Positions 11,171 to 63,413 of a DNA stretch of 64,000 nucleotides are shown here, piece by piece (the stretch's first letter is position 1; each line of letters starts with the position of its first letter). A program made the translations under genes and the position numbers. Where the stretch lies: the NCBI GenBank assembly GCA_026770705.1, contig JANJGN010000038.1, positions 2,232,001 to 2,296,000 of the forward strand, given 5' to 3'. The stretch comes from Isurus oxyrinchus (Eukaryota). Under the pieces are notes generated by a model, which saw nothing but the letters and a program-made list of their open reading frames with translations, did not search any database and was not told the origin of the DNA.

Positions 11171-12320
11171 ATGGAACTGGTAAAACAGCTATTTCCTGTA
11201 ATTTATGCAAACAGGAAATGCACAATATATGTCAACTCCTGCAGGAGAATACTGCCTGACATGGAGGAGAGTAGAAAAATAGACTTGCTGTGGCTGCCCA
11301 TCTCTGGGTCAAACTGATTCTCTCCACTTCTGTAGGATCAGAGTCTGCTGTGGGATCTACTTGCCAGGAGAATTTTTCTGACTGTCACAGTATCGAGCAG
11401 TAAAATCAGGAGGAAGAAGAGGCATGGAGTTAGAATACAATCCAGCCAGTCAAACATTCTCCATGGAACTGAAATATAAAATGCCAATGTTATGCTCCAG
11501 AGACAGACTACATTATTAAAGATATACATAGGTTAATTTATGAAATAAAAAGTGATGTTTATCAAAGAAACCAGCATCCAGACCATTGCTTAAATTACAG
11601 CTGCTGTTTTTTCAGTGCAGCATTTCATTTTCAACTCCAGGTGACAAATGGCTAGAAAGCGGTAAAAGGTGAAAGCGAAAGTTAACCAGAGGGAGCAGTC
11701 TCTGGAAGGGAAGCTTAGAGCAACAATAAGACGACAGGTGAGAGTGGTGGACATAAAACTGTCTGGAAAATAAACAGCCAGAAACAGCTTAATACCAGTG
11801 TATTGATAATCACAAGGAGATCTGTCACTGCCATGGATACCAGATACTTGGCATCTGGAGAGACCACATCGTCCTCGGAAAGGGTCACGATCGTGAGAAA
11901 GTTAGCTGTAAGGCAGAGAGAAAGAGAGAGAGTTGGAGAGAGAAGGACGGAATTAGTGCTGAAATTCCCAGCTACAACATCAGTTTGGTGGTATGGCGGA
12001 ATGATATGGAATATGGATCATCAATACTTGATTCAACGGTGGAACTGATAAGTTTACCAATGTAAAGATAGTACACTAGGCTACAGAGAGAAGACACTTG
12101 CCCCCTGTAAAAGCCATTACCCAGACAAGCAACCACAGAGACATAGCTCGGCCATCTTGAGGACACAAAGGGTTGAGTTCTGAGAGAATTCCTTTTAAAA
12201 GTTAAGAGAAAGGCACACTATACTATTAAGAAATTGTACTGGATCGTAAGTACTTAACTTCTTCAAATCAATATTTGTTCGAAAATCAAGATTGTTCAAT
12301 AACATGGATTTAAAATTTTA

Positions 12321-14682
12321 AAACAAAAACAGAATTACCTGGAAAAACTCAGCAGGTCTGGCAGCATCGGCAGAGAAGAAAAGAGTTGACGTTTTGAGTC
12401 CTCATGACCCTTCGACAGAACTTGATTTCGAGTCCAAGAAAGAGTTGAAATATAAGCTGGTTTAAGGTGTGTGTGTGGGGGGCGGAGAGATAGAGAGAGA
12501 GAGGTGGTTGTGTAGACAAACAAGCAGTGATAGAAGCAGATCATCAAAAGATGTCAGCGACAATGGTACAAAAGAACACATAGGTGTTAAAGTTAAAGTT
12601 GGTGATATTATCTAAACGAATGTGCTAATTAAGAATGGATGGTAGGGCACTCAAGGTACAGTTCTAGTGGGGGTGGAGGGAGCATAAAAGATTTTAAAAT
12701 ATTTAAAAATAATGGAAATAGGTGGGAAAAGAAAAATCTATAAAATTTATAGAGAAAAAAAAGGAAAAAGGGGGAAACAGAAAGGGGGTGGGGATGGGGG
12801 AGGGAGCTCACGACCTAAAGTTGTTGAATTCAATATTCAGACCGGAAGGCTGTAAGGTGCCTAGTCGGAAGATGAGGTGTTGTTCCTCCAGTTTGCGTTG
12901 GGCTTCACTGGAACAATGCAGCAAGCCAAGGACAGACATGTGGGCAAGAGAGCAGGGTGGAGTGTTAAAATGGCAAGCGACAGGGAGGTTTGGGTCATTC
13001 TTGCGGACAGACCGCAGGTGTTCTGCAAAGCGGTCGCCCAGTTTACGTTTGGTCTCTCCAATGTAGAGGAGACCACATTGGGAGCAACGAATGCAGTAGA
13101 CTAAGTTGGGGGAAATGCAAGTGAAATGCTGCTTCACTTGAAAGGAATGTTTGGGCCCTTGGACGGTGAGGAGAGAGGAAGTGAAGGGGCAGGTGTTACA
13201 TCTTTTGCGTGGGCATGGGGTGGTGCCATAGGAGGGGGCTGAGGAGTAGGGGGTGATGGAGGAGTGGACCAGGGTGTCCCGGAGGGAGCGATCCCTACGG
13301 AATGCCGATAAGGGGGGTGAAGGGAAGATGTGTTTGGTGGTGGCATCATGCTGGAGCTGGCGGAAATGGCGGAGGATGATCCTTTGAATGCGGAGGCTGG
13401 TGGGGTGATAAGTGAGGACAAGGGGGACCCTATCATGTTTCTGGGAGGGAGGAGAAGGCGTGAGGGCGGATGCGCGGGAGATGGGCCGGACACGGTTGAG
13501 GGCCCTGTCAACGACCGTGGGTGGAAAACCTCGGTTAAGGAAGAAGGAGGACATGTCAGAGGAACCGTTTTTGAAGGTAGCATCATCGGAACAGATGCGA
13601 CGAAGGCGAAGGAACTGGGAGAATGGGATGGAGTCCTTACAGGAAGCGGGGTGTAAGGAGCTGTAGTCGAGGTAGTTGTGGGAGTCGGTGGGTTTGTAAT
13701 GGATATTGGTGGACAGTCTATCACCAGAGATTGAGACAGAGAGGTCAAGGAAGGGAAGGGAAGTGTCAGAGATGGACCAGGTGAAAATGATGGAGGGGTG
13801 GAGATTGGAAGCAAAATTAATAAATTTTTCCAAGTCCCGACGAGAGCATGAAGCGGCACCGAAGTAATCATCGATGTACCGGAGAAAAAGTTGTGGAAGG
13901 GGGCCGGAGTAGGACTGCAACAAGGAATGTTCCACATACCCCATAAAGAGACAGGCATAGCTGGGGCCCATGCGGGTACCCATAGCCACACCTTTTATTT
14001 GGAGAAAGTGAGAGGAGTTGAAGGAGAAATTGTTCAACGTGAGAACAAGTTCAGCCAGACGGAGGAGAGTAGTGGTGGATGGGGATTGTTCGGGCCTCTG
14101 TTCGAGGAAGAAGCTAAGGGCCCTCAGACCATCCTGGTGGGGGATGGAGGTGTAGAGGGATTGGACGTCCATGGTGAAGAGGAAGCGGTTGGAGCCAGGG
14201 AACTGGAAATTGTTGATGTGACGTAAGGTGTCAGAGGAATCACGGATGTAGGTGGGAAGGGACTGGACAAGGGGAGAGAGAAGGGAGTCAAGATAACGAG
14301 AAATGAGTTCTGTGGGGCAGGAGCAAGCTGAGACGATCGGTCTACCGGGGCAGTTCTGTTTGTGGATTTTGGGTAGGAGATAGAAGCGGGCCGTCCGAGG
14401 TTGGGCGACTATCAGGTTGGAAGCTGTGGGAGGGAGATCCCCAGAGGAGATGAGGTCAGTGACAGTCCTGGAAACAATGGCTTGATGTTCAGTGGTGGGG
14501 TCATGGTCCAGGGAGAGGTAGGAGGAAGTGTCTGCGAGTTGACACTCAGCCTCCGCGAGGTAGAGGTCAGTGTGCCAGACAACAACAGCACCACCCTTGT
14601 CAGCGGGTTTGATGACAATGTCAGGGTTGAACCTGAGAGAATGGAGTGCAGTAAGTTCAGAGAGAGACAGGTTAGAATGGGT
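12321..14682 (-). mobile_element. Penelope-like retroelement (Neptune clade), 5'-truncated, with 3' pseudo-LTR
   Basis: RT plus GIY-YIG ORF followed by a pLTR (about 12321-12807) shared with four other copies. Possible 8-bp TSD AAATTTTA at 12313-12320 and 14683-14690. Confidence 0.95.
12808..14682 (-). CDS. Penelope RT + zinc knuckle + GIY-YIG endonuclease, open for about 625 codons (N-terminus missing)
   Basis: Manual translation upstream of the tracked Met 14172 stays open (IKPADKGGAVVV, FYLLPKIHK, PGRPIVS). Downstream motifs: MDVQSLYT, GVAMG, RYIDD, CPRKRCNTC linker, LVYCIRCSQCGLLYIGET. Confidence 0.92.
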   Translation of the reverse strand, partial: THSNLSLSELTALHSLRFNPDIVIKPADKGGAVVVWHTDLYLAEAECQLADTSSYLSLDHDPTTEHQAIVSRTVTDLISSGDLPPTASNLIVAQPRTARFYLLPKIHKQNCPGRPIVSACSCPTELISRYLDSLLSPLVQSLPTYIRDSSDTLRHINNFQFPGSNRFLFTMDVQSLYTSIPHQDGLRALSFFLEQRPEQSPSTTTLLRLAELVLTLNNFSFNSSHFLQIKGVAMGTRMGPSYACLFMGYVEHSLLQSYSGPLPQLFLRYIDDYFGAASCSRRDLEKFINFASNLHPSIIFTWSISDTSLPFLDLSVSISGDRLSTNIHYKPTDSHNYLDYSSLHPASCKDSIPFSQFLRLRRICSDDATFKNGSSDMSSFFLNRGFPPTVVDRALNRVRPISRASALTPSPPSQKHDRVPLVLTYHPTSLRIQRIILRHFRQLQHDATTKHIFPSPPLSAFRRDRSLRDTLVHSSITPYSSAPSYGTTPCPRKRCNTCPFTSSLLTVQGPKHSFQVKQHFTCISPNLVYCIRCSQCGLLYIGETKRKLGDRFAEHLRSVRKNDPNLPVACHFNTPPCSLAHMSVLGLLHCSSEAQRKLEEQHLIFRLGTLQPSGLNIEFNNFRS

Positions 14683-15178
14683 AAATTTTATACTATTTCA
14701 CTTATTCATAAGTAATTAATCAAAAGCTGTCGCCTCACACTGAAATCCTCACGAATCCACATATTGATAACAATATTTACCCTAGAATAAGCAAGCTCTT
14801 CTAAGTGCTGGTAGTGGTAAACTTGAAAAGAGCTTCTTTCACAGAATAATATGCCTTTAGTTATATTCTACTCTGATTTAATTTTACTGGTTCGACAACT
14901 CCTAGGAGTGAAGCTATTTAATTTCAGGACAGAGCTTTTAGAAGGTAAAGTTGACTAGGTTATTTTAACGAACTTTTTCTCTTAGTTGATGTTATAAGCT
15001 AAAATTAAGTTTGAGTGGGTAGGTTTACCATTCCATGTGGAAAAGATTGTATAATCATAAACAGATAGGCATAAAACCTCCTGCCAATTTCTTTATAATC
15101 TACTTTACTTCATCCTCCAATGTCAATATCTGCTTCATTAATTCTTCTTCCTAAAGATACGGTTCTAACTGGAGCTGA

Positions 15179-15217
15179 GGTTTTTGTACGGCGCTGTCGC
15201 CCCTTACTACACGTGTG
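15179..15217 (-). promoter_or_regulatory. 23-bp-spacer recombination signal sequence (RSS)
   Basis: Minus strand reads CACACGT (15217-15211), exactly 23 nt, then the consensus nonamer ACAAAAACC (15187-15179), directly after the codons TTC TGT GCT GTA. Confidence 0.85.
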
Positions 15218-15465
15218 TACAGCACAGAAGTGTCTGTGAGACTCAAAGCTGAGATAGTCAGGGGGCTGCTTTTATCCAAGCTTCAACTGACGGCTCTAAA
15301 TCGACCTTTTTGTTCACCGTTTGTTGACGCCATTATCAGCAACTTTGGGCTCTGATTTGGAGGCTTAACGTACCAATATATCACAGGGAATGGGATGGTT
15401 GTGCGGCAGTGCATCAATATCATTTTCTGTTCAGCCGGAGTCTCTGATGGATAAGTTTGTATAAC

Positions 15466-16523
15466 AAAAACAGAATTACCTGGAAAACCTCAGCAGGTCT
15501 GGCAGCATCGGCGGAGAAGAAAAGAGTTGACGTTTCGAGTCCTCATGACCCTTCGACAGAACTTGATTTCGAGTCCAAGAAAGAGTTGAAATATAAGCTG
15601 GTTTAAGGTGTGTGTGTGGGGCGGAGAGAGAGAGAGAGAGGTGGTTGTGTAGACAAACAAGCAGTGATAGAAGCAGATCATCAAAAGATGTCAGCGACAA
15701 TAGTACAAAAGAACACATAGGTGTTAAAGTTAAAGTTGGTGATATTATCTAAACGAATGTGCTAATTAAGAATGGATGGTAGGGCACTCAAGGTACAGAT
15801 CTAGTGGGGGTGGAGGGAGCATAAAAGATTTTAAAATATTTAAAAATAATGGAAATAGGTGGGAAAAGAAAAATCTATAAAATTTATAGGGAAAAAAAAG
15901 GGGAAAAGGGGGAAACAGAAAGGGGGTGGGCATGGGGGAGGGAGCTCACGACCTAAAGTTGTTGAACTCAATATTCAGACCAGAAGGCTGTAAGGTGCCT
16001 AGTCGGAAGATGAGGTGTTGTTCCTCCCCACCCCCTTTCTGTTTCCCCCTTTTCCCCTTTTTTCTCCCTATAAATTTTATAGATTTTTCTTTTCCCACCT
16101 ATTTCCATTATTTTTAAATATTTTAAAATCTTTTATGCTCCCTCCACCCCCACTAGAGCTGTACCTTGAGTGCCCTACCATCCATTCTTAATTAGCACAT
16201 TCGTTTAGATAATATCACCAACTTTATCTTTAACACCTATGTGTTCTTTTGTACCATTGTCGCTGACATCTTTTGATGATCTGCTTCTATCACTGCTTGT
16301 TTGTCTACACAACCACCTCTCTCTCTCCGCCCCACACACACACCTTAAACCAGCTTATATTTCAACTCTTTCTTGGACTCGAAATCAAGTTCTGTCGAAG
16401 GGTCATGAGGACTCGAAACGTCAACTCTTTTCTTCTCCGCCGATGCTGCCAGACCTGCTGAGTTTTTCCAGGTAATTCTGTTTTTCTTTTGGATTTCCAG
16501 CATCCGCAGTTTTGTTTTGTTTT
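15466..16523. mobile_element. Fold-back Penelope insertion: inverted pLTR plus ORF end (15466-16026) joined to a forward pLTR with tail (16027-16523)
   Basis: Arms are near-perfect reverse complements. Exact 14-bp TSD TAAGTTTGTATAAC at 15452-15465 and 16524-16537. Confidence 0.95.
16388..16426 (+). ncRNA. Minimal hammerhead-ribozyme-like motif in the pLTR (non-canonical core CUGUCGA)
   Basis: agtt CTGTCGA A GGGTC atgag GACTC GAAAC GTC aact gives stem I, stem II, GAAA and a GUC site. Other copies: 12384-12422(-), 15525-15563(-), 20344-20382(-), 23446-23484(+). Confidence 0.7.
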
Positions 16524-18020
16524 TAAGTTTGTATAACGTCTGTTTAACCTGCAAGACACAAAGTGAGCACTAGAGCAAAGCCACCAGCTCTAATCATGCC
16601 CAACAGGTAACTCCGAAATATAGGAGCAGGTGGATGACTTTCAACTCTTCAGCCCTGCTCCAAATTCATCTAGTTCTCAATTGGTCTGAAGCCTAAATTT
16701 ATTTATCCTCCTTAGCCCAATATACCATGATACAATTGTGCTTAGCTAAGGAACATCTTGAAAATATAGTGAAAAGGTACAAAGAGCACAAACATATATA
16801 ATAATGAGGCAAGATACCCCTTGAAAAATTAGAGTCTAAATGTGGCAGGGAACAAGGGGGTCTACAGTGACTGGTGCAAGTTCCGTAGCGACAGAGTTTA
16901 TCCACGCAATTTGACACACACAACAAAAACTGAGTTTCATTTCTAAAGGGAGGAAACTGAAAATCAGAAAAGTTGCATTACTGTTACATTGAGACCCGTT
17001 GGATCACACGTGAGAATCTCCAACCACAGTTCTAGTCTTCATTTCGATAAATTTGTTTTTACTCGCATGACAAGAAATTTGAGATCATAATGGCTAGATA
17101 TCTTGCAGACGCTGTGTCTCTTATCTCGAGAAATGAGTAAAGTGGGTTACACCCTGATAAATATTTTTGGGTTACAGAAGTGTTTGTTAAAATATATATA
17201 GGGCAAACGTATCAACTTGTGGGAATTACTAGAAGTGGTTGTATCAATATAAGATAGATGAAGAGTTATTGGGGCATTCTCTTGCTTAGCGTAATCAGCC
17301 GCACAGACCTGCTGGGCTGAGTGCCCTGTTTCTGTGCTGTATATCCTGTAATTCTACTTAATGCTTTGAATGAATCAAATCCAAATACTTTGGAGGCAAG
17401 AGCTTCGGATTCATAACCCTCTGCATGGAAGAAATTCAGTTTCTCCTCAAATATAGCCTACCTCTAATTGTAATATTATACACCCTCATCCTTTATTCTC
17501 CGAAAGAAGAATTATTTTTCTGTCAAATAGTTTAACACTAAATCACCTCGAACAGACCTCCTTTCAATATTCTATAGTCAATGGAATAAACTGACAATTC
17601 TGCAACCTCTCCACACAATTTAATATTCTGTCCCTAGTATCCTGCAGGTCAATCTGTGCTGTATTAACTCGGAAGCAACTTTATGTTGCCTGTGGTGAGG
17701 AGCACAGAGCTGAATGCATTCATGTAGATACCGTCTGAGCAGACTACTGATGCCTAACTTTTGCCGCTACCTGTCCCAGTTATCTTCCAATAAGGACTTA
17801 CCTCCTTTCGCCATTCCGATTGTATTTTCTTCACCTCTACACGATTTCAATGATTGTAAAAGAGGACAATTTAGTATCATTAAAATCCTTCTTTTCTCCG
17901 TGGTTAAAGTTTGAAGATTCAAGGTGAATGCCCTCACACCTGCCCACAGTAAGCTCAATCTGCCACATTGTCTCTATTCATTTATTTTATCAACTTCCTT
18001 CTTACATCTACATACATAAT

Positions 18021-18599: not shown

Positions 18600-19580
18600 A
18601 AAAGGGGGCTCATAACCATAAGGAAAAGGCCAATCACTGGCAGGGTAAACTTTTTCTCCCCACCAGGGGTTTCACTGGGGCCAGTGCGTATCAATTGAGG
18701 GACAAAGGGAGCTCCTCCTAATCCAGTGGTGACTCCAGTCATAGCTCCATTAATACATGGGTACAGCAAATCCTCATAGTAGCACATGCACAACACCCTA
18801 TAACACCTAATAAAACTAACCCAATTAAAACATCAGCAGCTAACTTTCCCAACTGGCGAACCACCCCGTTACTGTAGCCCGCCAGGAATCCTTGTTATAA
18901 ACACTGCTCAACCTTTCCCCAACTTTCTTTATTTCTCACACTTTATCCATAACATGCTGTTCCAGGTCAATAATATTCTCAGAAACATCAGGCACATAGG
19001 CGCAGCATTCTGAGCCTATTATGGCACAAGTGCCACCTTTTTCAGCTAGGAGGAAATCAAGGGCCATTCTATTTTGTTGAGCTGTCAGCCGTAGGGCTAA
19101 CATTTCAGCAGTGGTGTCTGAAATCTGTTTCTGGGTCTCAATAAAAGCATTTTCCGTTGAATTGGCAAATTTTTCAAGCGCAGCTGCCAGGTTGATAACC
19201 TCTCGGGAGTTACGCACAGTTCCACAAGAGGGGATAGCAATCATCCAGCATCGTTCAGATTTTGAGATGTTACGACGATGGAGACGCAGATGCGGGTGAA
19301 TATCTGATGCTACAGGGCTGCCAGACAACGAGTGGCTTGGACCCAATCTTCCTTCCCTTTAATCTTCAGGGCTGTACGAGTTGTTAGCAGCACCAGATAG
19401 GGTCCTTTCCACTCTCTCATGCAATTCAGCTGTTGTTTTGCATTGAGGAAAATGAGTACAAATCCAACATTCAGTCCGATGAACTTGCAAGGCTACGGCC
19501 TGTATTTGTTGAACCACAGAATTGGTATTCCATGCCCCTGCAAGGACCATGCAGGACAGGATCCAAATCATTCCGATGGC
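18600..19580 (-). pseudogene. env: Gamma-type retroviral env (frameshifted, short)
   Basis: Signal peptide MIWILSCMVLAGA, SU CWIC motif, basic cleavage site RLHRR, immunosuppressive domain QQNRMALDFLLAEKGG, CX6CC (CAIIGSECC), hydrophobic TM near 18780-18840. Confidence 0.9.
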
Positions 19581-19617
19581 TCAGTTAAAGTTCTTGCACA
19601 AGCACTTCCGTCCGAGG

Positions 19618-20290
19618 TCAGCGTCTGTTTGACGTGCGATGTGTGGATCCACAAGTGCATCCTTCAATCTTCATGGCTGTATGGGTGGTGAGCAGGACTT
19701 GGAAAGGTTCTTCCCATCGAGGTTCCAAACAGTTCTTTCTACTGAAGGTCTTTACCAGGACTAGGTCCCCGGGCTGGTATTGATGGCAGTCTTCAGTGGT
19801 GGGCTTTTTCTGAGCTTCTACTACCTGTATATGTGAGCTCTTGAGACAGTTACTGTGAGAGCGCATAGTCATGAGCGCCAAGGGTAGAGCTTCAGGCCCT
19901 TTCAAACTGGTTTCTTCACATAATTTAGATAGTTTGTTTTTCAGAATACTATTTTGTCCTGCCATCGCTCCAGTAGACCGGGGGTGGTATGGGCAGGAAA
20001 GGTGATGGTTGCATTGTAAGGCCTTCAACAGTTCCTTTATCACTTCAGCAGTAAAATGAACAATTTTACAACAACAGCATCATTGCATTGGGTGGGATAC
20101 GCCTCCACCCATCGCAAGAACAAACACACTAGAATTAAAACATATTTATATCCCATACATTTAGGCATTTGTATAAAGTCCATTTGTAGGTGTGCAAATG
20201 GGCCCCATGGCTGGGGTCCCGTACCAGCAGTCACTGTGGGCGTCTTACCTGGGTTATGTCATTGACATAGGTATGACAGGTATTACTAAT
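19618..20290 (-). pseudogene. pol: Class I ERV integrase remnant
   Basis: PFAHLQMDFIQMPKC.GYKYVL..VC.F.RWVEAYPT, CPYHPRSTG..AGQNSILK, YQPGDLVLVK, LEPRWEEPFQVLLTT.TA.K. Confidence 0.92.
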
Positions 20291-20292
20291 AT

Positions 20293-23200
20293 AATTACCT
20301 GGAAAAACTCAGCAGGTCTGGCAGCATTGGCGGAGAAGAAAAGAGTTGATGTTTCGAGTCCTCATGACCCTTCGACAGAACTTGAGTTTGAATCCAAGAA
20401 AGAGTTGAAATATAAGCTGGTTTAAGGTGTGTGGGGGGGGGGGGGGAGAGAGAAAGAGAGAGACAGAGGTGGAGTGGGGTGTGGTTGTAGGGACAAACAA
20501 GCAGTGATAGAAGCAGATCATCAAAAGATGTCAACAACATAGGTGTTAAAGTTAAAGTTGGTGATATTATCTAAACAAATGTGCTAATTAAGAATGGATT
20601 TCTCGGACTGCTGTTCCCGTCACATTCTGAAATCCACACTCAGTGCCATGCGGCGCCATATGAACACACTCGACCTCTCCCTCCAGCAGCACCGCCGTAC
20701 CCTTTTTCAAAGCTGCACGTGCCCCCAGTTTCATTTTATCCTTCGGCTCATCCGACGCCTCAACAAGAAACTTTTTCTCTTTCTCCCAAGTGCTAAGGAA
20801 CACAAGCTCCAACAACTCATTGACACCAACACCCATCTAGTACCCCCCACCCCGGCCTGTCCCTCCGTCCCCACCCCATCTTCCAATCCCAACACCAGCC
20901 ATGTATTCACTATACCCCCTGACCTTCCCCTCTCCGATGCTGAACGTTCAGTGCTCAGCAAAGGACTTAGTTTCATACCCTTACGCCCTCACCTCAATGA
21001 ATTTCGGGCTCGGCACGATGCTGAACTCTTCTTCTGCCGTCTTCGTCTCCAGGCTCACTTCTTTGGGCAGGAGTCCTCTCCCAGTTCAACGGATCCTTTG
21101 ACCCATCTCCAATATTCTCCCTCCACCTGGACCCCTCCTTCTGGATTCTTACCTTCTCTTGATCTTTTCATTGAGAACTAGCAGCACGACATTAGTTGTC
21201 TCAATTTCTCCGCTCCTCTCACCCATTCTAACCTGTCTCTCTCTGAACTTACTGCACTCCATGCTTTCAGGTCCAACCCTGACATTGTCATCAAACCCAC
21301 TGACAAGGGTGGTGCTGTTGTTGTCTGGCGCACTGACCTCTACCTTGCGGAGGCTGAGCGTCAACTCACAGACACTTCCTCCTACCCCTCCCTGGACCAT
21401 GACCCCACCACTGAACATCAAGCCATTGTTTCCAGGACTGTCACTGACCTCATCTCCTCTGGGAATCTCCCTCCCACAGCTTCCAACCTGATAGTCGCCC
21501 AACCTCGGATGGCCCGCTTCTATCTCCTACGCAAAATCCACAAACAGAACTGCCCCGGTAGACCGATCGTCTCAGCTTGCTCCTGCCCCACAGAACTCAT
21601 TTCTCGTTATCTTGACTCCCTTCTCTCTCCCCTTGTCCAGTCCCTTCCCACCTACATCCGTGATTCCTCTGACACCTTACGTCACATCAACAATTTCCAG
21701 TTCCCTGGCCCCAACCGCTTCCTCTTCACGATGGACGTCCAATCCCTCTACACCTCCATCCCCCACCAGGATGATCTGAGGGCCCTTAGCTTCTTCCTCG
21801 AACAGAGGCCTGAAAAATCCCCATCCGCAAACTACTCTCCTCCGTCTGGCTGAACTTGTTCTCACGCTGAACAATTTCTCCTTCAACTCCTCTCACTTCC
21901 TCCAAATAAAAGGTGTGGCTATGGGTACCCACATGGGCCCCAGCTACACCTGTCTCTTTATGGGGTACGTGGAACATTCCTTGTTCCAGTCCTCCTCCGG
22001 CCCCCTTCCACAACTCTTTCTCCGGTACATCGATGATTACTTCAGTGCTGCTTCATCCTCTCGTCGGGACTTAGAAAAATTTATTGATTTTGCTTCCAAT
22101 CTCCACCCCTCCATCATTTTCACGTGGTCCATCTCTGACACTTCCCTTCCCTTCCTTGACCTCTCTGTCTCAATCTCTGGTGATAGACTGTCCACCAATA
22201 TTCATTACAAACCCACCGACTCCCACAGCTACCTCGACTACAGCTCTTCACACCCCGCTTCCTGTAAGGACTCCATCCCATTCTCTCAGTTCCTTCGCCT
22301 CCGTTGCATCTGTTCTGATGATGCTACCTTCAAAAACAGTTCCTCTGACATGTCCTCCTTCTTCCTTAACCGAGGCTTTCCACCCACAGTCGTTGATAGG
22401 GCCCTCAACCGTGTCCGGCCCATCTCCCGTGAATCTGCCCTCATGCCTTCTCCTTCCTCCCAGAAACATAATATGCTCCCCCTTGTCCTCACTTATCACC
22501 CCACCAGCCTCCGCATTCAAAGGATCATCTCCGCCATTTCCAGCATGATGCCACCACCAAATACATCTTCCCTGCACCCCCCCGGCGGCATTCCGTAGGG
22601 ATCATTCCCTCCGGGACACCCTGGTCCACTCCTCCATCACCCCCTACTCCTCAACCCCCTCCTTTGGCACCTCCCCATGCCCACGCAAAAGATGCAACAC
22701 CTGCCCCTTCACTTCCTCTCTCCTCACTATCCAAGGGCCCAAACAATCCTTTCAAGTGAAGCAGCATTTCACTTGCATTTCCCCCAACTTAGTCTACTGC
22801 ATTCGTTGCTCCCAATGTGGTCTCCTCTACATTGGAGAGACCAAACGTAAACTGGGCGACCACTTTGCAGAACACCTACGGTCTGTCCGCAAGAATGACC
22901 CAAACCTCCCTGTTGCTTGCCATTTTAACACTCCACCCTGCTCTCTTGCCCACATGTCTGTCCTCGGTTTGTTGCATTGTTCCAGTGAAGCCCAACGCAA
23001 ACTGGAGGAACAGCATCTCATCTTCCGACTAGGCACTTTACAGCCTTCCGGACTGAATATTGAATTCAACAACTTTAGATCTTGTCCACCCTCATCCATC
23101 CCCACCCCCTTTCTGTTTCTTCCCCCTTCCTTTTGTTTTTTCCAATAATTTATACAGACTTTTCTTTTCCCAAGTATTTCCATTATTTTTAAATCTTTTA

Positions 23201-23548
23201 TGCCCCCCCACCACCACTAGAGCTATACTTTGGGTGCCCTACCATCCATTCTTAATCAGCACATTCGTTTAGATAATATCACCAACCTCAACACCTCTGT
23301 GTGCTTTTGTTCTTCAGTCTGTGACATCTTTTGATTATCTGCTCCTATCACTGCTTGCTTGTCCCTGCAACCACACCACCCCTCCACTTCTCCCCCCCCC
23401 CACCTTAAACCATCTTATATTTCACCCGTCTTCTTGGATTCAACCAGTACTGCTGAAGGGTCCCGAGGACTCGAAACGTCAACTTTTTTCTTCTCCGTCA
23501 ATGCTGCCAGACCTGCTGAATTTTTCCAGGTAATTCTGTTATTGTTTA
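20293..23548 (+). mobile_element. Longer Neptune Penelope copy: inverted pLTR (20293-20600), disrupted ORF (about 20600-23100), forward pLTR
   Basis: LSDAERSVLSKGLSFIP N-terminal motif, RT (RYIDD) and GIY-YIG in several frames. Stop at about 21179 and frameshifts near 21830 and 22540-22590. Confidence 0.95.
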
Positions 23549-30912: not shown

Positions 30913-31053
30913 NNNNNNNNNNNNNNNNNNNNNNNNNNNNNNNNNNNNNNNNNNNNNNNNNNNNNNNNNNNNNNNNNNNNNNNNNNNNNNNNNNNNNNNN
31001 NNNNNNNNNNNNNNNNNNNNNNNNNNNNNNNNNNNNNNNNNNNNNNNNNNNNN
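30913..31053. other. Assembly gap (141 N)
   Basis: Run of n. Confidence 1.
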
Positions 31054-31199
31054 TGATTGTAGAAGGAGCTTTAACCTGTTATACCACCTGAAACAAAGAT
31101 TTCACCATGCACAGCGGGGAGAAACTGTGCAAGTGTACTGTGTGTGGACAAGAATTCAACTGATTATCCAACCTGGAGAGGCACAGGAACATCGACACC

Positions 31200-31928
31200 A
31201 TGGAGAAACCGTGGAACTGCGGGGATTGTGGGAAGAGATTCAGATCCCCCTCTGAGCTGGAAACTCATGGACGCATTCACACTGGGGAGAGACCGTTTAT
31301 CTGTTGCGATTGTGGGAAGGGATTCGCTCGACTAACTAACCTCACTTCACACCAACTTGTTCATTCAGACATGAGACCTTTTAAATGTTGTGACTGTGAG
31401 AAGAGCTTTAAAAGCAAAAAGAATCTGCTAATACACCAGCGAGTTCACACTGGGGAGAGGCCATTCACCTGCTTTGACTGTGGGAAGGGATTCGCTCAGT
31501 TATCCAACCTGCTGCGACACCAGAGAGTTCACACTGGAGAGAGGCCATTCACCTGCTTTGACTGTGGGAAGGGATTCGCTCAGTTATCCAACCTGCTGCG
31601 ACACCAGAGAGTTCACACTGGAGAGAGGCCATTCACCTGCTTTGACTGTGGGAAGGGATTCACTCAGTTATCCAACCTGCTACGACACCAGAGAGTTCAC
31701 ACTGGAGAGAGGCCATTCACCTGCTCCAAGTGTGGGAAGGGATTCACTCAGTTAAGTACCCTCACTTCACATCAACTTGTTCACTCTGACAAGAGACCTT
31801 TTAAATGTTCTGATTGTGAAAAGTGCTTTAAAAGCAGAAAGATTCTGCTGACACACCAGCAAGTTCACACTGGGCAGAAACCATTCAACTACTCCAAGTG
31901 TGGGAAGAGGTTCATTCAACTAACCTAG
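31200..31928 (+). CDS. KRAB-less C2H2 zinc-finger protein, 242 aa, 8 intact fingers; the ancestral frame continues to 32210 past an in-frame TAG
   Basis: Strong ACCATGG start, CxxC-x12-HxxxH repeats with TGERPF linkers, shared ZNF 3' UTR and AATAAA near 32356. Confidence 0.8.
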   Translation: MEKPWNCGDCGKRFRSPSELETHGRIHTGERPFICCDCGKGFARLTNLTSHQLVHSDMRPFKCCDCEKSFKSKKNLLIHQRVHTGERPFTCFDCGKGFAQLSNLLRHQRVHTGERPFTCFDCGKGFAQLSNLLRHQRVHTGERPFTCFDCGKGFTQLSNLLRHQRVHTGERPFTCSKCGKGFTQLSTLTSHQLVHSDKRPFKCSDCEKCFKSRKILLTHQQVHTGQKPFNYSKCGKRFIQLT

Positions 31929-39409: not shown

Positions 39410-39930
39410 CCAGGCTCAAGGCCCAATGCTGAACTTTGGGTCATAGTTTGACCGTCCCAGGTCTCAGAGAAAAACAATTCCCCAAACAAACATCTTGTTG
39501 GATCTTGGTTTATTGATACCATAAGAAGTTTGGACCAGTTGAGTCCTCCTGTGTACTCGATGGGGATTGACTTTAACAGAGTTAATATCCTCTGGATTTC
39601 AGTGTCAGAACATGTTTTAGCAAAGCTAAAAAGTATATAAATACTGAAATACTGAACAGAACAAACACAGCAGGTCAATCACCATTAGAAAATGATAAGT
39701 TAATAGTCACTGTTTCAGGTGGGACTCCTTCAGAATGAACACTTCCCACCACCAGCACCAACCCCCTCCCCCCATCCCCCTCCCTATGAACTGAACATTC
39801 CTCCACCCACTCATCCACCAATGGCTCCCAGCTTGGATTGACATTCAGCATGAACCCAGTGAGAGAGCGAGCTGGCCCATGGGATGTCAGAATGGACAAG
39901 AGCTGGAAATGGTCGCAATCAATGTGTTTT
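39410..39930. repeat. Duplicated module (direct partner 63453-64000)
   Basis: High-identity match including accagttgagtcctcctgtgtactcgatggggattgactttaacagagtt. Confidence 0.9.
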
Positions 39931-40080
39931 ATGTGTCATTGTTCAAAATAGGAAACGTAATATTTTGTCAAGCCCCCATGTGCACATCCTTGGTGCATTA
40001 CAATTTCTCACCCAGTCCTTTCCTCTGGTTTCAACATGGTGCATCCTGTGTGGGTTCAGCAGAGGTTGAGGCAGACTGCT

Positions 40081-40490
40081 CGGGAGATGGGGGCAGTGTG
40101 TCGGGGGTTGGGCAGAGTGTCGGGAGATGGGGGCAGAGTGTCGGGAGATGGGGGCAGAGTGTCGGAAGATGGGGGCAGAGTGTCGGGAGATGGGGGCAGA
40201 GTGTCGGGAGATGGGGGCAGAGTGTCAGGGGATGGGGGCAGAGTGTCGGGAGATGGGGGCAGAGTGTCGGGAGATGGGGGCAGAGTGTCGGGAGATGGGG
40301 CAGAGTGTTGGGAGATGGGGGCAGAGTGTCGGGAGATGGGGCAGAGTGTCGGGAGATGGGGGCAGAGTGTCGGGACATGGGGGCAGAGTGTCGGGACATG
40401 GGGGCAGAGTGTCGGGAGATGGGGACAGAGTGTCAGGAGATGGGGACAGAGTGTCGGGAGATGGGGGCAGAGTGTCGGGAGATGGGGGCA
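40081..40490 (+). repeat. 21-bp G-rich minisatellite (CGGGAGATGGGGGCAGAGTGT), about 19 copies
   Basis: Directly visible; explains the 7-aa-period ORFs in all six frames. Confidence 0.97.
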
Positions 40491-40683
40491 GCTTTTTGGG
40501 AGACGGGACATGTATACTGTACACGTTCTTCTTCATAATCCACAACACTATTCCTGATGTTCTTGAGCTGCCTCACTTTCTTTCCCATTCACTCCATTTG
40601 CTGATCTATCAGTAATGGACTTGCTGCCATCTCGAACAAAACTGTTTTCACCACTAAGGCTTCGCTGGTATGTAATAGTCTTC

Positions 40684-41387: not shown

Positions 41388-42985
41388 ATTTATTTAACAG
41401 ACATCAAGATATTAAACTTCAGCCAAGTTACAGGGATTATTAACATCAGCAGAAACAAACCACAACTATCAGAATGAACATGGTTCAGTTCTGGGTGTGA
41501 TTAACAACAGCAATAACAGCAGAATCCAACCCCTGCAGACACTTGTGAACTCGCTGGTGTCTGAGCAGGTGGGATGAGCAAGTGAATCCCTGCCTCCATT
41601 CGGAGAATGTGAACAGCCTCTCCCCAGTGTGAACTCGCTGGTGTCTCAACAGGTTGGATAAATGAGTGAATCCCTTTCCACACTCGGAGCAGGTGGATGG
41701 TCTCTCTCCAATGTGAATTCACTGGTGTACACTGAGGTGGAATGAAGGCTGAATCCCTTTTCCACAGGAAGTACAGGTGAACGGCCTCTCCATGTGTGAA
41801 TTCGCTGGTGTTTCAGCAGGTGGGATGACTGAGTGAATCCCTTCCCACGCTCAGAGCAAGTGAACGGTCTCTCCCCAGTGTGAATTCGCTGGTGCACTTT
41901 GAGGTTGAATAAAGTCCTGAATCTCTTTCCACAGGAAGTACAACTAAATGGCCTTTCCTCAGTGTGAATTAGGTTAGAAGAGCCAGTGAATCCCTTCCCA
42001 CATACCATGCAGATGAATGCTCTCTCTCCAGTGTGAACTTGCTGGTGTCTCAGCAGGTGGGATGACCGAGTGAATCCCTTCCCACACTGGGAGCAGGTGA
42101 ATGGTCTCTCTCCAGTGTGAACTTGCTGGTGTGTCAACAGATGGGATGACCGAGTGAATCCCTCCCCACACTCGGAGCAGGTGAATGGTCTCTCTCCATT
42201 GTGAACGTGCTGGTGTATCAGCAGGTGGGATGACCGAGTGAATCCCTTCCCACACTTGGAGCAGGTGAATGGTCTCTCTCCAAAGTGAATTCGCTGGTGT
42301 GTCAGCAGGAGGGATGACTGAGTGAATCCCTTCCCACAATCGGAGCAAGTGAATGGTCTCTCTCCAGTGTGAACTCGCTGGTGTGTCAGCAGGTGGGATG
42401 ACCGAGTGAATCCCTTCCTACACTGGGAGCAGGTGAATGGTCTCTCTCCAGTGTGAACTTGCTGGTGTTTCAGCAGGAGGGATGACTGAGTGAATCCCTT
42501 CCCACAATCGGAGCAGGTGAACAGCCTTTCCCCAGTGTGACTGCGTCGATGGATTTCCAGTTAGGATGGACAATTGAATCCTTGCCCACAGTCCTCACAT
42601 TTCCACGGTTTCTCCATGGTGCAGGTGTCCCTGTGTCTCTCCAAGTTTGATGATCAGTTGAAGCCTCGTCCACACAGAGAACACGTGTAGTTTCTCCCCG
42701 CTGTGAATGGTGTGATGCTATTTCAGGCTTTATAACTGGTTAAAGCTCTTTCCACAGTCAGTTCACTGGAACACTCTCACTCGGGTGTGTGTGTGTCTCG
42801 GTGCTTTTCCAGTTACACTGATGTTTGAAATATTTTCCCACAGACAGAACAGACAAACATTTCTCCCTCCACATTCAAAGGTGATGATATTCAGGTCCTG
42901 ATGAATCGAGTGACTCTGTCAGATCTTGATGTGATGTTTGGTTTGAGTTTCCTGCCTGAAAATCTTCCCCTTCTAATTCTCTGTA
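41388..42985 (-). pseudogene. C2H2 zinc-finger pseudogene (about 12-13 fingers)
   Basis: Acceptor near 42983, ACCATGG start at 42617 ([11 protein letters not shown]), TAA at codon 19 (42561-42563), open finger array to about 41790 then a frameshift, shared 3' UTR and AATAAA near 41390. Confidence 0.9.
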
Positions 42986-61928: not shown

Positions 61929-62673
61929 TCAGAGTTTCTCCAATGTTATTTTGCTGACTGCGGTTCTTATTATTCCCGATTTTGACCAACAGAATTAGTT
62001 ATCGGGTAAATAGAATCGAACAAAAACTCCCGCGCTTTCTTATTTCCATTCATCTGCAAGGATTTGCGAAATCTGCAGATGGAAATGGAACAAAATTGAG
62101 CGAGTTTGGTGATATCCTTTCTATCTGGGTGGTTGTCTCTCCTTAGGCCTCTGTCCCTCTCGGTGGACATGTCTGTGTGTGTTCCGCTGTGTATGTCAAT
62201 GTGCTTCAGTTCCTCATTTTTAGCAATCCCCACTTGATTCACCTTAGTTGTTTGACTTCATTTTAAAATCGTACAGAGAGAATAAAAACCGGTTTAGGAG
62301 GAATTTTCTTCCTGTATTTCTGAGTGGAGACTGTTCAGTTACTAAGTGTCCGTATGTTACAAAGCGGAGGGAGATTGAAATTTTCACTGAGCAACATTTA
62401 AACAGACACCGAGTCCTTGTGGTGGATTAGTTAAGGCAATGGACACATCAAGAGAATTAATTTGTAAATACATATAGTCCAAACTGAAATCTCTCGGACA
62501 TTAGGAACTGTATTTCTTCTCGAAGCTGTTTCACGTGTGACATTTGCAGCTCTGATGTGAAATTTCAATTCTCACTCCACTGATTCGAGCGGAGCTGTTG
62601 TGCGTTTTCCGTTTTCAATCAATAAGTAAATCAGGCCTGTTTTAACAGTTTGTACCAGATCAATAAACCTTCA

Positions 62674-63339: not shown

Positions 63340-63413
63340 GGCTCCATAGCTCAGTGGTTTAGAGCACTGGTCTTGTAAACCAGGGGTTGTGAGTTCAATT
63401 CTCACTGGGGCCT
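63340..63413 (+). tRNA. tRNA-Thr(TGT)
   Basis: GGCTCCATAGCTCAGTGGTTTAGAGCACTGGTCTTGTAAACCAGGGGTTGTGAGTTCAATTCTCACTGGGGCCT; stems pair, one extra T in the D loop, T5 at 63422-63426. Confidence 0.93.

Follow-up and report, generated by a model that had tools for sequence, protein, structure and literature searches.

A V gene segment split by a retroelement

A window of 64,000 nucleotides from Isurus oxyrinchus (NCBI GenBank assembly GCA_026770705.1, contig JANJGN010000038.1, positions 2,232,001 to 2,296,000 of the forward strand) was analysed, and all coordinates given here are those of this 64-kb window. Its minus strand holds a variable (V) gene segment of antigen-receptor type together with a recombination signal sequence (RSS), and the exon is interrupted by a mobile element. 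The whole is probably a genomic fossil, a lone and dead V segment resembling those for alpha/delta chains in the T-cell receptor (TCR), which was later split by an insertion of Penelope type. The combined layout of V exon, RSS and insertion is far beyond chance. An earlier note, made from the letters of this DNA, had proposed a V segment of antigen-receptor type that is followed by an RSS with a 23-nt spacer, and this proposal is borne out by a V-set match, a catshark relative and an RSS in place.

When the minus strand of 14900-17100 was inspected, the V-set exon was found to be interrupted by an insertion of 1058 bp (15466-16523), flanked by an exact 14-bp direct repeat, TAAGTTTGTATAAC, which is the target-site duplication (TSD; 15452-15465 = 16524-16537). 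Downward from 15465 the minus strand gives 60 open codons, VIQTYPSETPAEQKMILMHCRTTIPFPVIYWYVKPPNQSPKLLIMASTNGEQKGRFRAVS (15286-15465), which form the V-set body from framework region (FR) 1 to the start of FR3 and include the first Cys and the conserved Trp. They are followed by a TGA stop and by the remainder of FR3, SLDKSSPLTISALSLTDT (15229-15282), after which F-C-A-V with the second Cys (15218-15229) is readable only in a shifted frame. Beyond FCAV and on the same strand come the RSS heptamer CACACGT (15217-15211), a spacer of 23 nt (15210-15188) and the nonamer ACAAAAACC (15187-15179), which agrees with the consensus at 9/9 positions. On the far flank of the insertion, ACA GAC followed by GTT ATA CAA ACT TA encodes T D V I Q T Y and keeps the frame of the near flank. 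The codons V I Q T Y- belong to the TSD copy at 16524-16537, and T-D, just ahead of the V start (16538-16543, minus strand), matches the ...VTD of the catshark relative. The insertion site lies within codon 5-6 of the V region. It had been claimed that excision of the element restores one frame; this is true across the junction, but the TGA within V and the out-of-frame FCAV break the reading further on.

Relatives and the recombination signal

All similarity searches of the V exon were made with its separate pieces, not with the joined peptide obtained by removing the insertion. The 60-aa piece matches the Pfam V-set family with an E value of 8e-4, and the first Cys, the conserved Trp and the second Cys are all present, the last in the shifted frame only. 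When 1.84 billion representatives were searched exhaustively, two close relatives of this piece were obtained, P0002 and P0004. The former is the Scyliorhinus torazame hypothetical protein scyTo_0018210 (GCB75380.1, UniRef A0A401PQI7), which is 70% identical to the 60-aa piece (E 4e-32) and, in a tblastn comparison with the window, 68.7% identical over 83 aa (E 2.6e-38). P0004, together with P0018 and P0019, represents open reading frames (ORFs) from Logan contigs with 52-56% identity. Moreover, GCB75380.1 and P0004 pass the Pfam V-set threshold (cut-off 26 bits) at 45 and 51 bits.

The ORFs of the two close relatives continue past the second Cys, as ...FCVVSPTQCCMERQSPYKNL and ...YYCAVHTQCQRAPETVQKL, and both follow the pattern ...C(V/A)V..TQC...(Y/Q)K(N)L. 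In this pattern T-Q-C and (Y/Q)-K-(N)-L are the coding of a CACAGTG-type heptamer and of the nonamer ACAAAAAC, at about the right spacing, and the nonamer region of the window V aligns with it as APYKNL in a third frame. Because both relatives read through an equivalent heptamer and nonamer, the RSS was inherited with the V family and is no chance match. In addition, only two perfect ACAAAAACC nonamers are present on both strands of the window (128 kb of sequence), and one of them is that of the V segment.

Lesions and the order of events

Besides the transposon the V gene carries four lesions. An in-frame TAA (16544-16546, minus strand) stands in the last leader codons, at the position of L-PART2. 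The in-frame TGA (15283-15285, minus strand) stands where both relatives have Arg, being a change of CGA to TGA. A 3n+1 deletion at about 15229 takes out the A-x-Y codons ahead of F-C. Finally, the heptamer (15211-15217) is degenerate: it retains only the CACA of CACAGTG, with positions 5-7 off the consensus, and its region lacks one codon that P0004 has (CAVHT-C vs CAVHTQC); the departure at positions 5-7 apparently came from a small deletion relative to the relatives. The V gene is deader than had been stated before, the TGA, the TAA and the 4/7 heptamer being absent from the earlier note. Its claim that the CAC and the nonamer are intact is correct for these two elements as such (CAC kept, nonamer 9/9), but the heptamer as a whole agrees with CACAGTG at just 4/7 positions.

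The age of these lesions can be judged from contigs of four public runs that were aligned to 14690-17100 and that come from two organisms. Organism A is the species of the window; a few sites of its sequence do not agree with the window, which makes it another haplotype or individual. Organism B is a closely related species, about 1-2% diverged. The contigs of A (14690-15478 and 16499-16860) enter the insertion at both of its edges. Those of B cover 15073-15393 and 16524-16654, where the TGA, the frameshift and the TAA are all present and the RSS is identical. The leader TAA, the CGA-to-TGA stop and the 3n+1 deletion are common to A and B, and so the V gene was dead before these two shark-type species split.

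The insertion most likely came after that split; it would be recent and confined to the lineage of the sequenced species. The slight divergence between its two arms, given below, is in keeping with a recent date. In two samples of species B a contig of 188 nt lying on 16524-16654 stops aligning exactly at the edge of the TSD (16524) and goes on for 57 further letters, which is what is expected of an empty site. A point against this part of the account is that the empty site is judged from contig ends, the joint from 15451 to 16524 not being among the joints listed, which were taken up by repeat-derived ones. The element would thus have entered an already dead V gene.

The Penelope-like insertion

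That the segment is split by a TSD-flanked inverted-repeat retroelement had been proposed before and holds. The insertion is a Penelope-like element (PLE), of the kind that encodes a reverse transcriptase (RT) and a GIY-YIG endonuclease, in a typical fold-back form. One arm is a minus-oriented, 5'-truncated 3' end of 561 nt (15466-16026), which includes the last ORF codons ...LIFRLGTLQPSGLNIEFNNFRS-stop; the other is a plus-oriented, 5'-truncated 3' end of 462 nt (16027-16488). A tail of 35 nt (16489-16523, plus strand) extends beyond the inverted repeat on one side only. The arms are 99% complementary, differing at about 5 of 460 positions and by a 6-bp GA indel. Such truncation at the 5' end, a neighbouring inverted copy, a tail of 30-40 bp on one side only and a TSD of variable length have been described as the signature of Penelope-like elements (Craig et al. 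2021, PMC8557442).

Two longer copies of the element are found nearby. With the 3' end of the copy at 12321-14682 (minus strand) the arms share 96-97% identity, and with the copy at 20293-23547 (plus strand) about 81%. The former is 5'-truncated, with a stretch of 629 open codons (12811-14697), and RVT_1 and GIY-YIG domains were recognized in 12808-14172 (minus strand), in an ORF ending in the same LIFRLGTLQPSGLNIEFNNFRS tail that is also found at the centre of the insertion. The latter is longer, has a broken ORF and is 92% identical to the copy at 12321-14682. Sub-threshold Rfam matches to miRNAs and snoRNAs on the long hairpin (12000-17200) were taken as artefacts of any long inverted repeat.

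A small hairpin at 61696-61943 is built from the terminal 100 nt or so of the same Penelope family, tail included. It shares 97-99% identity with the insertion at its ends and resembles a very short fold-back insertion.

The leader

A hydrophobic, leader-like ORF that starts with ATG, MIRAGGFALVLTLCLAG, lies at 16547-16597 on the minus strand; it is contiguous with the V exon, shares its frame and measures 49 nt (16 codons and 1 nt) up to a CAG/GT junction, which is the canonical length of L-PART1, and the junction is at the usual phase-1 site of the leader intron. The same bases, CTCACTTTGTGTCTTGCAG followed by GT, also read as a good polypyrimidine 3' splice site, after which comes an L-PART2 of 11 nt. 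The leader had previously been placed at 16760-16815. That stretch was rejected, as it has neither an ATG nor a phase-1 donor, and the ATG-initiated ORF at 16597-16547 is the better leader.

For all antigen-receptor genes a split leader has been given as the canonical form (PMC12227049). Judged from its sequence, the window V may be without the canonical leader intron; alternatively, the ATG-initiated ORF may be a product of chance and the true L-PART1 may have been lost. One explanation for a contiguous leader is that the window V, or the small family as a whole, is a processed V, the retro-copy of a germline (sterile) transcript that had been spliced and extended across the RSS. This would account for the lack of a leader intron as well as for the orphan position, and we regard it as possible, if somewhat doubtful. 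The ATG leader abuts the rest of the leader precisely at the phase-1 intron site and in frame with V, and within 1.7 kb no further leader exon was detected. A leader of Met and hydrophobic residues is likewise present, 18-25 residues before V.QT.PS, in the catshark model and in P0004 and P0019, which are unspliced Logan ORFs. Nevertheless the 3' splice site formed by the same bases is excellent and its 11-nt L-PART2 canonical, the upstream ATG ORF could have arisen by chance (roughly 5-10%, by our own estimate), and neither a poly(A) tract nor a flanking TSD is present downstream of the RSS.

A more far-reaching form of the idea, to which we give rather little credence, is that the small family of the window V, GCB75380.1 and P0004 consists of segments of the rearranging type that have an RSS but no split leader. 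Such a family could stem from a germline V transcript that was spliced and then retro-copied along with its RSS. If this is true, there would be an RNA-mediated route by which V segments recognisable by RAG are seeded outside the receptor loci, the window copy being dead and the catshark copy open. If the catshark relative also proves to have no leader intron, a unit of V plus RSS would have been moved or remodelled via an RNA copy, and this would bear on the spread of orphon V segments and of cryptic RAG targets. The apparently unsplit leader is the sole point of wider interest in this locus.

Receptor class

From similarity and sequence motifs, the alpha/delta type of TCR seems the likelier class for the segment. 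The best full-span matches of the 60-aa piece in PDB are mouse TCR alpha chains, and light chains match it along the WY..P.QSPKLLI stretch only. Compared per domain, GCB75380.1 scores 31-38 bits against TRAV-like domains (hamster, gar, turtles), 20-28 against kappa and 23 against lambda, which places the TRAV-like domains about 10 bits above both. Among the matches that carry names are several described as 'T-cell receptor alpha chain V region' and a single IGKV4-1. In the ESM Atlas, clusters of TCR-alpha V (TVA11, TRAV41) come out on top, by features as well as by structure. In addition, the KGRF...SL.IS.L..TD motif, the FR3 of the form KGRF-R-A-V...K-S-S-.L-T-I-S, the C-A-V end and the 23-nt spacer of the RSS fit TRAV/TRDV. 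Two features reported for elasmobranch antigen-receptor regions are relevant here: scattered V exons of TCR alpha/delta type outside the main array, and V exons 'intermediate in sequence' between TCR and immunoglobulin (Ig) in sharks (Flajnik et al. 2025, PMC12227049).

Several points weigh against this reading. When PDB was searched with GCB75380.1 or with the family profile, kappa single-chain variable fragments (scFvs) ranked level with TCR alpha; these searches were swamped by two-domain scFv chains, and kappa and TCR alpha are not separable in them. The FR2 (WYV.PPNQ.PKLLI) and the LTISSL motif are also light-chain-like. The alpha/delta call, although favoured, is drawn from tetrapod and gar sequences and from motifs, not from shark V sets. 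Finally, no rearranged transcript joining V to joining (J) and constant (C) regions was found for the family, only unrearranged read-through ORFs, in databases that are poor in shark receptor chains; searches for rearranged forms with GCB75380.1, the V region of P0018 and the family profile as queries returned only P0002 and P0004 again. The alpha/delta class proposed at the outset is therefore favoured by domain scores and motifs but is not proven, the PDB searches failing to separate kappa.

It is unlikely that the V is instead the relic of an Ig light-chain mini-cluster, with a lambda or sigma-like V and its 23-RSS. The light-chain character of FR2 and LTISSL, the kappa scFv domains that score as high as TCR alpha in PDB, the match named IGKV4-1 and the intermediate V exons of sharks (PMC12227049) can all be read in this way. 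The FR3, however, does not have the RFSGS pattern of light chains but KGRF-R-A-V...K-S-S, the coding ends of the family read FCAV, FCVV or YYCAV, and the per-domain advantage of the TRAV-like domains over kappa and lambda is against a light chain. Moreover, a shark light-chain cluster would be expected to have J or C within about 0.5 kb downstream, and neither is there, yet a Penelope copy now fills 12321-14682.

Present state of the RSS

The V locus would do nothing at present, and what is left of its RSS would be no more than a weakened, cryptic target of RAG that has no partner signal within range. The earlier suggestion that it could still be a RAG substrate is overstated. That RAG cuts this RSS in lymphocytes, with the site serving as a cryptic substrate or one for trans-rearrangement, is very unlikely. 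It has in its favour the CAC and a perfect nonamer at exactly 23 nt, as well as the identity of the RSS in species B, though this identity is weightless at a divergence of 1-2%. The altered heptamer positions 5-7 argue against it, and the window offers no 12-RSS partner, no J and no diversity (D) segment; nor is there a CTCF-type motif nearby, since a scan for such motifs found none near the V and its RSS, with counts at chance level.

The spacer of the RSS (15188-15210, minus strand) includes AGTAAGGGGCGACAG, which loosely resembles the CTCF core. This resemblance failed the scan at two mismatches and is probably due to chance. A run labelled X20 ('RNA?') was rejected as evidence of transcription, as its coverage, at a depth of about 2, is the same over the V as over the non-genic flank.

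That the V is a domain of a non-rearranging member of the Ig superfamily with an RSS-like sequence beside it by chance has no support other than the absence of J and C nearby, and this explanation is effectively refuted by the family-wide RSS, relatives in other species also reading through a heptamer and a nonamer at this position, and by the count of just two perfect nonamers in 128 kb of sequence.

Genomic surroundings

The V segment is alone in the window, as had been suggested before. The remainder includes ORFs for C2H2 zinc fingers, three tRNA genes, a fragment of a retrovirus and transposons, the Penelope copies among them. An RSS scan and motif scans for J (FGxG), V and C1-set gave no other V, J or C in the 64 kb, and no further Ig or TCR element was detected there when six V proteins were compared by phmmer with all six frames or when 141 open segments were searched with Pfam. 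The 64 kb show no signature of J (or D) segments or of a C gene around the V.

At 18936-20079 (minus strand) lies an endogenous gammaretrovirus-like fragment, with part of the env TM (TLV_coat, E 7e-7) and a murine leukaemia virus (MLV) integrase C-terminal domain (E 4e-13) in separate ORFs. Two C2H2 zinc-finger arrays of 8 or more fingers, at 31164-31928 (plus strand) and 41649-42560 (minus strand), are apparently KZNF-like genes; a run of 141 N (30913-31053) stands just upstream of the first. The GC-rich minisatellite at 39795-40615 is open in several frames on both strands (GQSVGRW and GAECREM repeats) and is probably non-coding. The tRNA genes, all on the plus strand, are Lys-CTT (55316-55389), Asn-GTT (57912-57987) and Thr-TGT (63340-63413).

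Significance and comparison with known systems

The result is mainly of help in annotation: where a young Penelope fold-back conceals a V segment, excision of the insertion at its TSD allows the segment to be recovered. It adds one more isolated TCR alpha/delta-like V fossil to the dispersed V exons of elasmobranch genomes (PMC12227049) and gives a dated order of events, with the death of the gene first and the insertion most likely after the species split. Both the V segment and the insertion are of known kinds; neither is a working gene nor a new kind of gene.

The insertion can be compared with the endonuclease-bearing (EN+) PLEs of the Neptune, Penelope and Poseidon type (PMC8557442). The nearby long copies share with them the RT with a C-terminal GIY-YIG domain and strong 5' truncation, and the insertion itself shares the inverted 5'-truncated fold-back, the one-sided tail (35 nt) and the TSD (14 bp). 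They differ in that no hammerhead ribozyme was found by Rfam in 12000-17200 at E values up to 1, a search which a degenerate motif could escape.

With TRAV/TRDV segments, their pseudogenes and orphons, the window V has in common the first Cys, the Trp, the second Cys, an FR3 of KGRF type, the C-A-V end and an RSS with a 23-nt spacer directly past the coding end, and its stops and frameshift are as in many V segments. It differs from them by its isolation among zinc-finger genes, transposons and tRNA genes, with neither a second V nor any J or C in 64 kb, by a leader that is apparently contiguous and without a visible split, and by its light-chain-like FR2.

The closest comparison is with GCB75380.1, P0004, P0018 and P0019. 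These have open frames, whereas the window V has its four lesions, the transposon and a shortened heptamer. Nevertheless all are alike in their FR motifs and in the read-through of heptamer and nonamer, and with identities of 52-70% they form one small V family.

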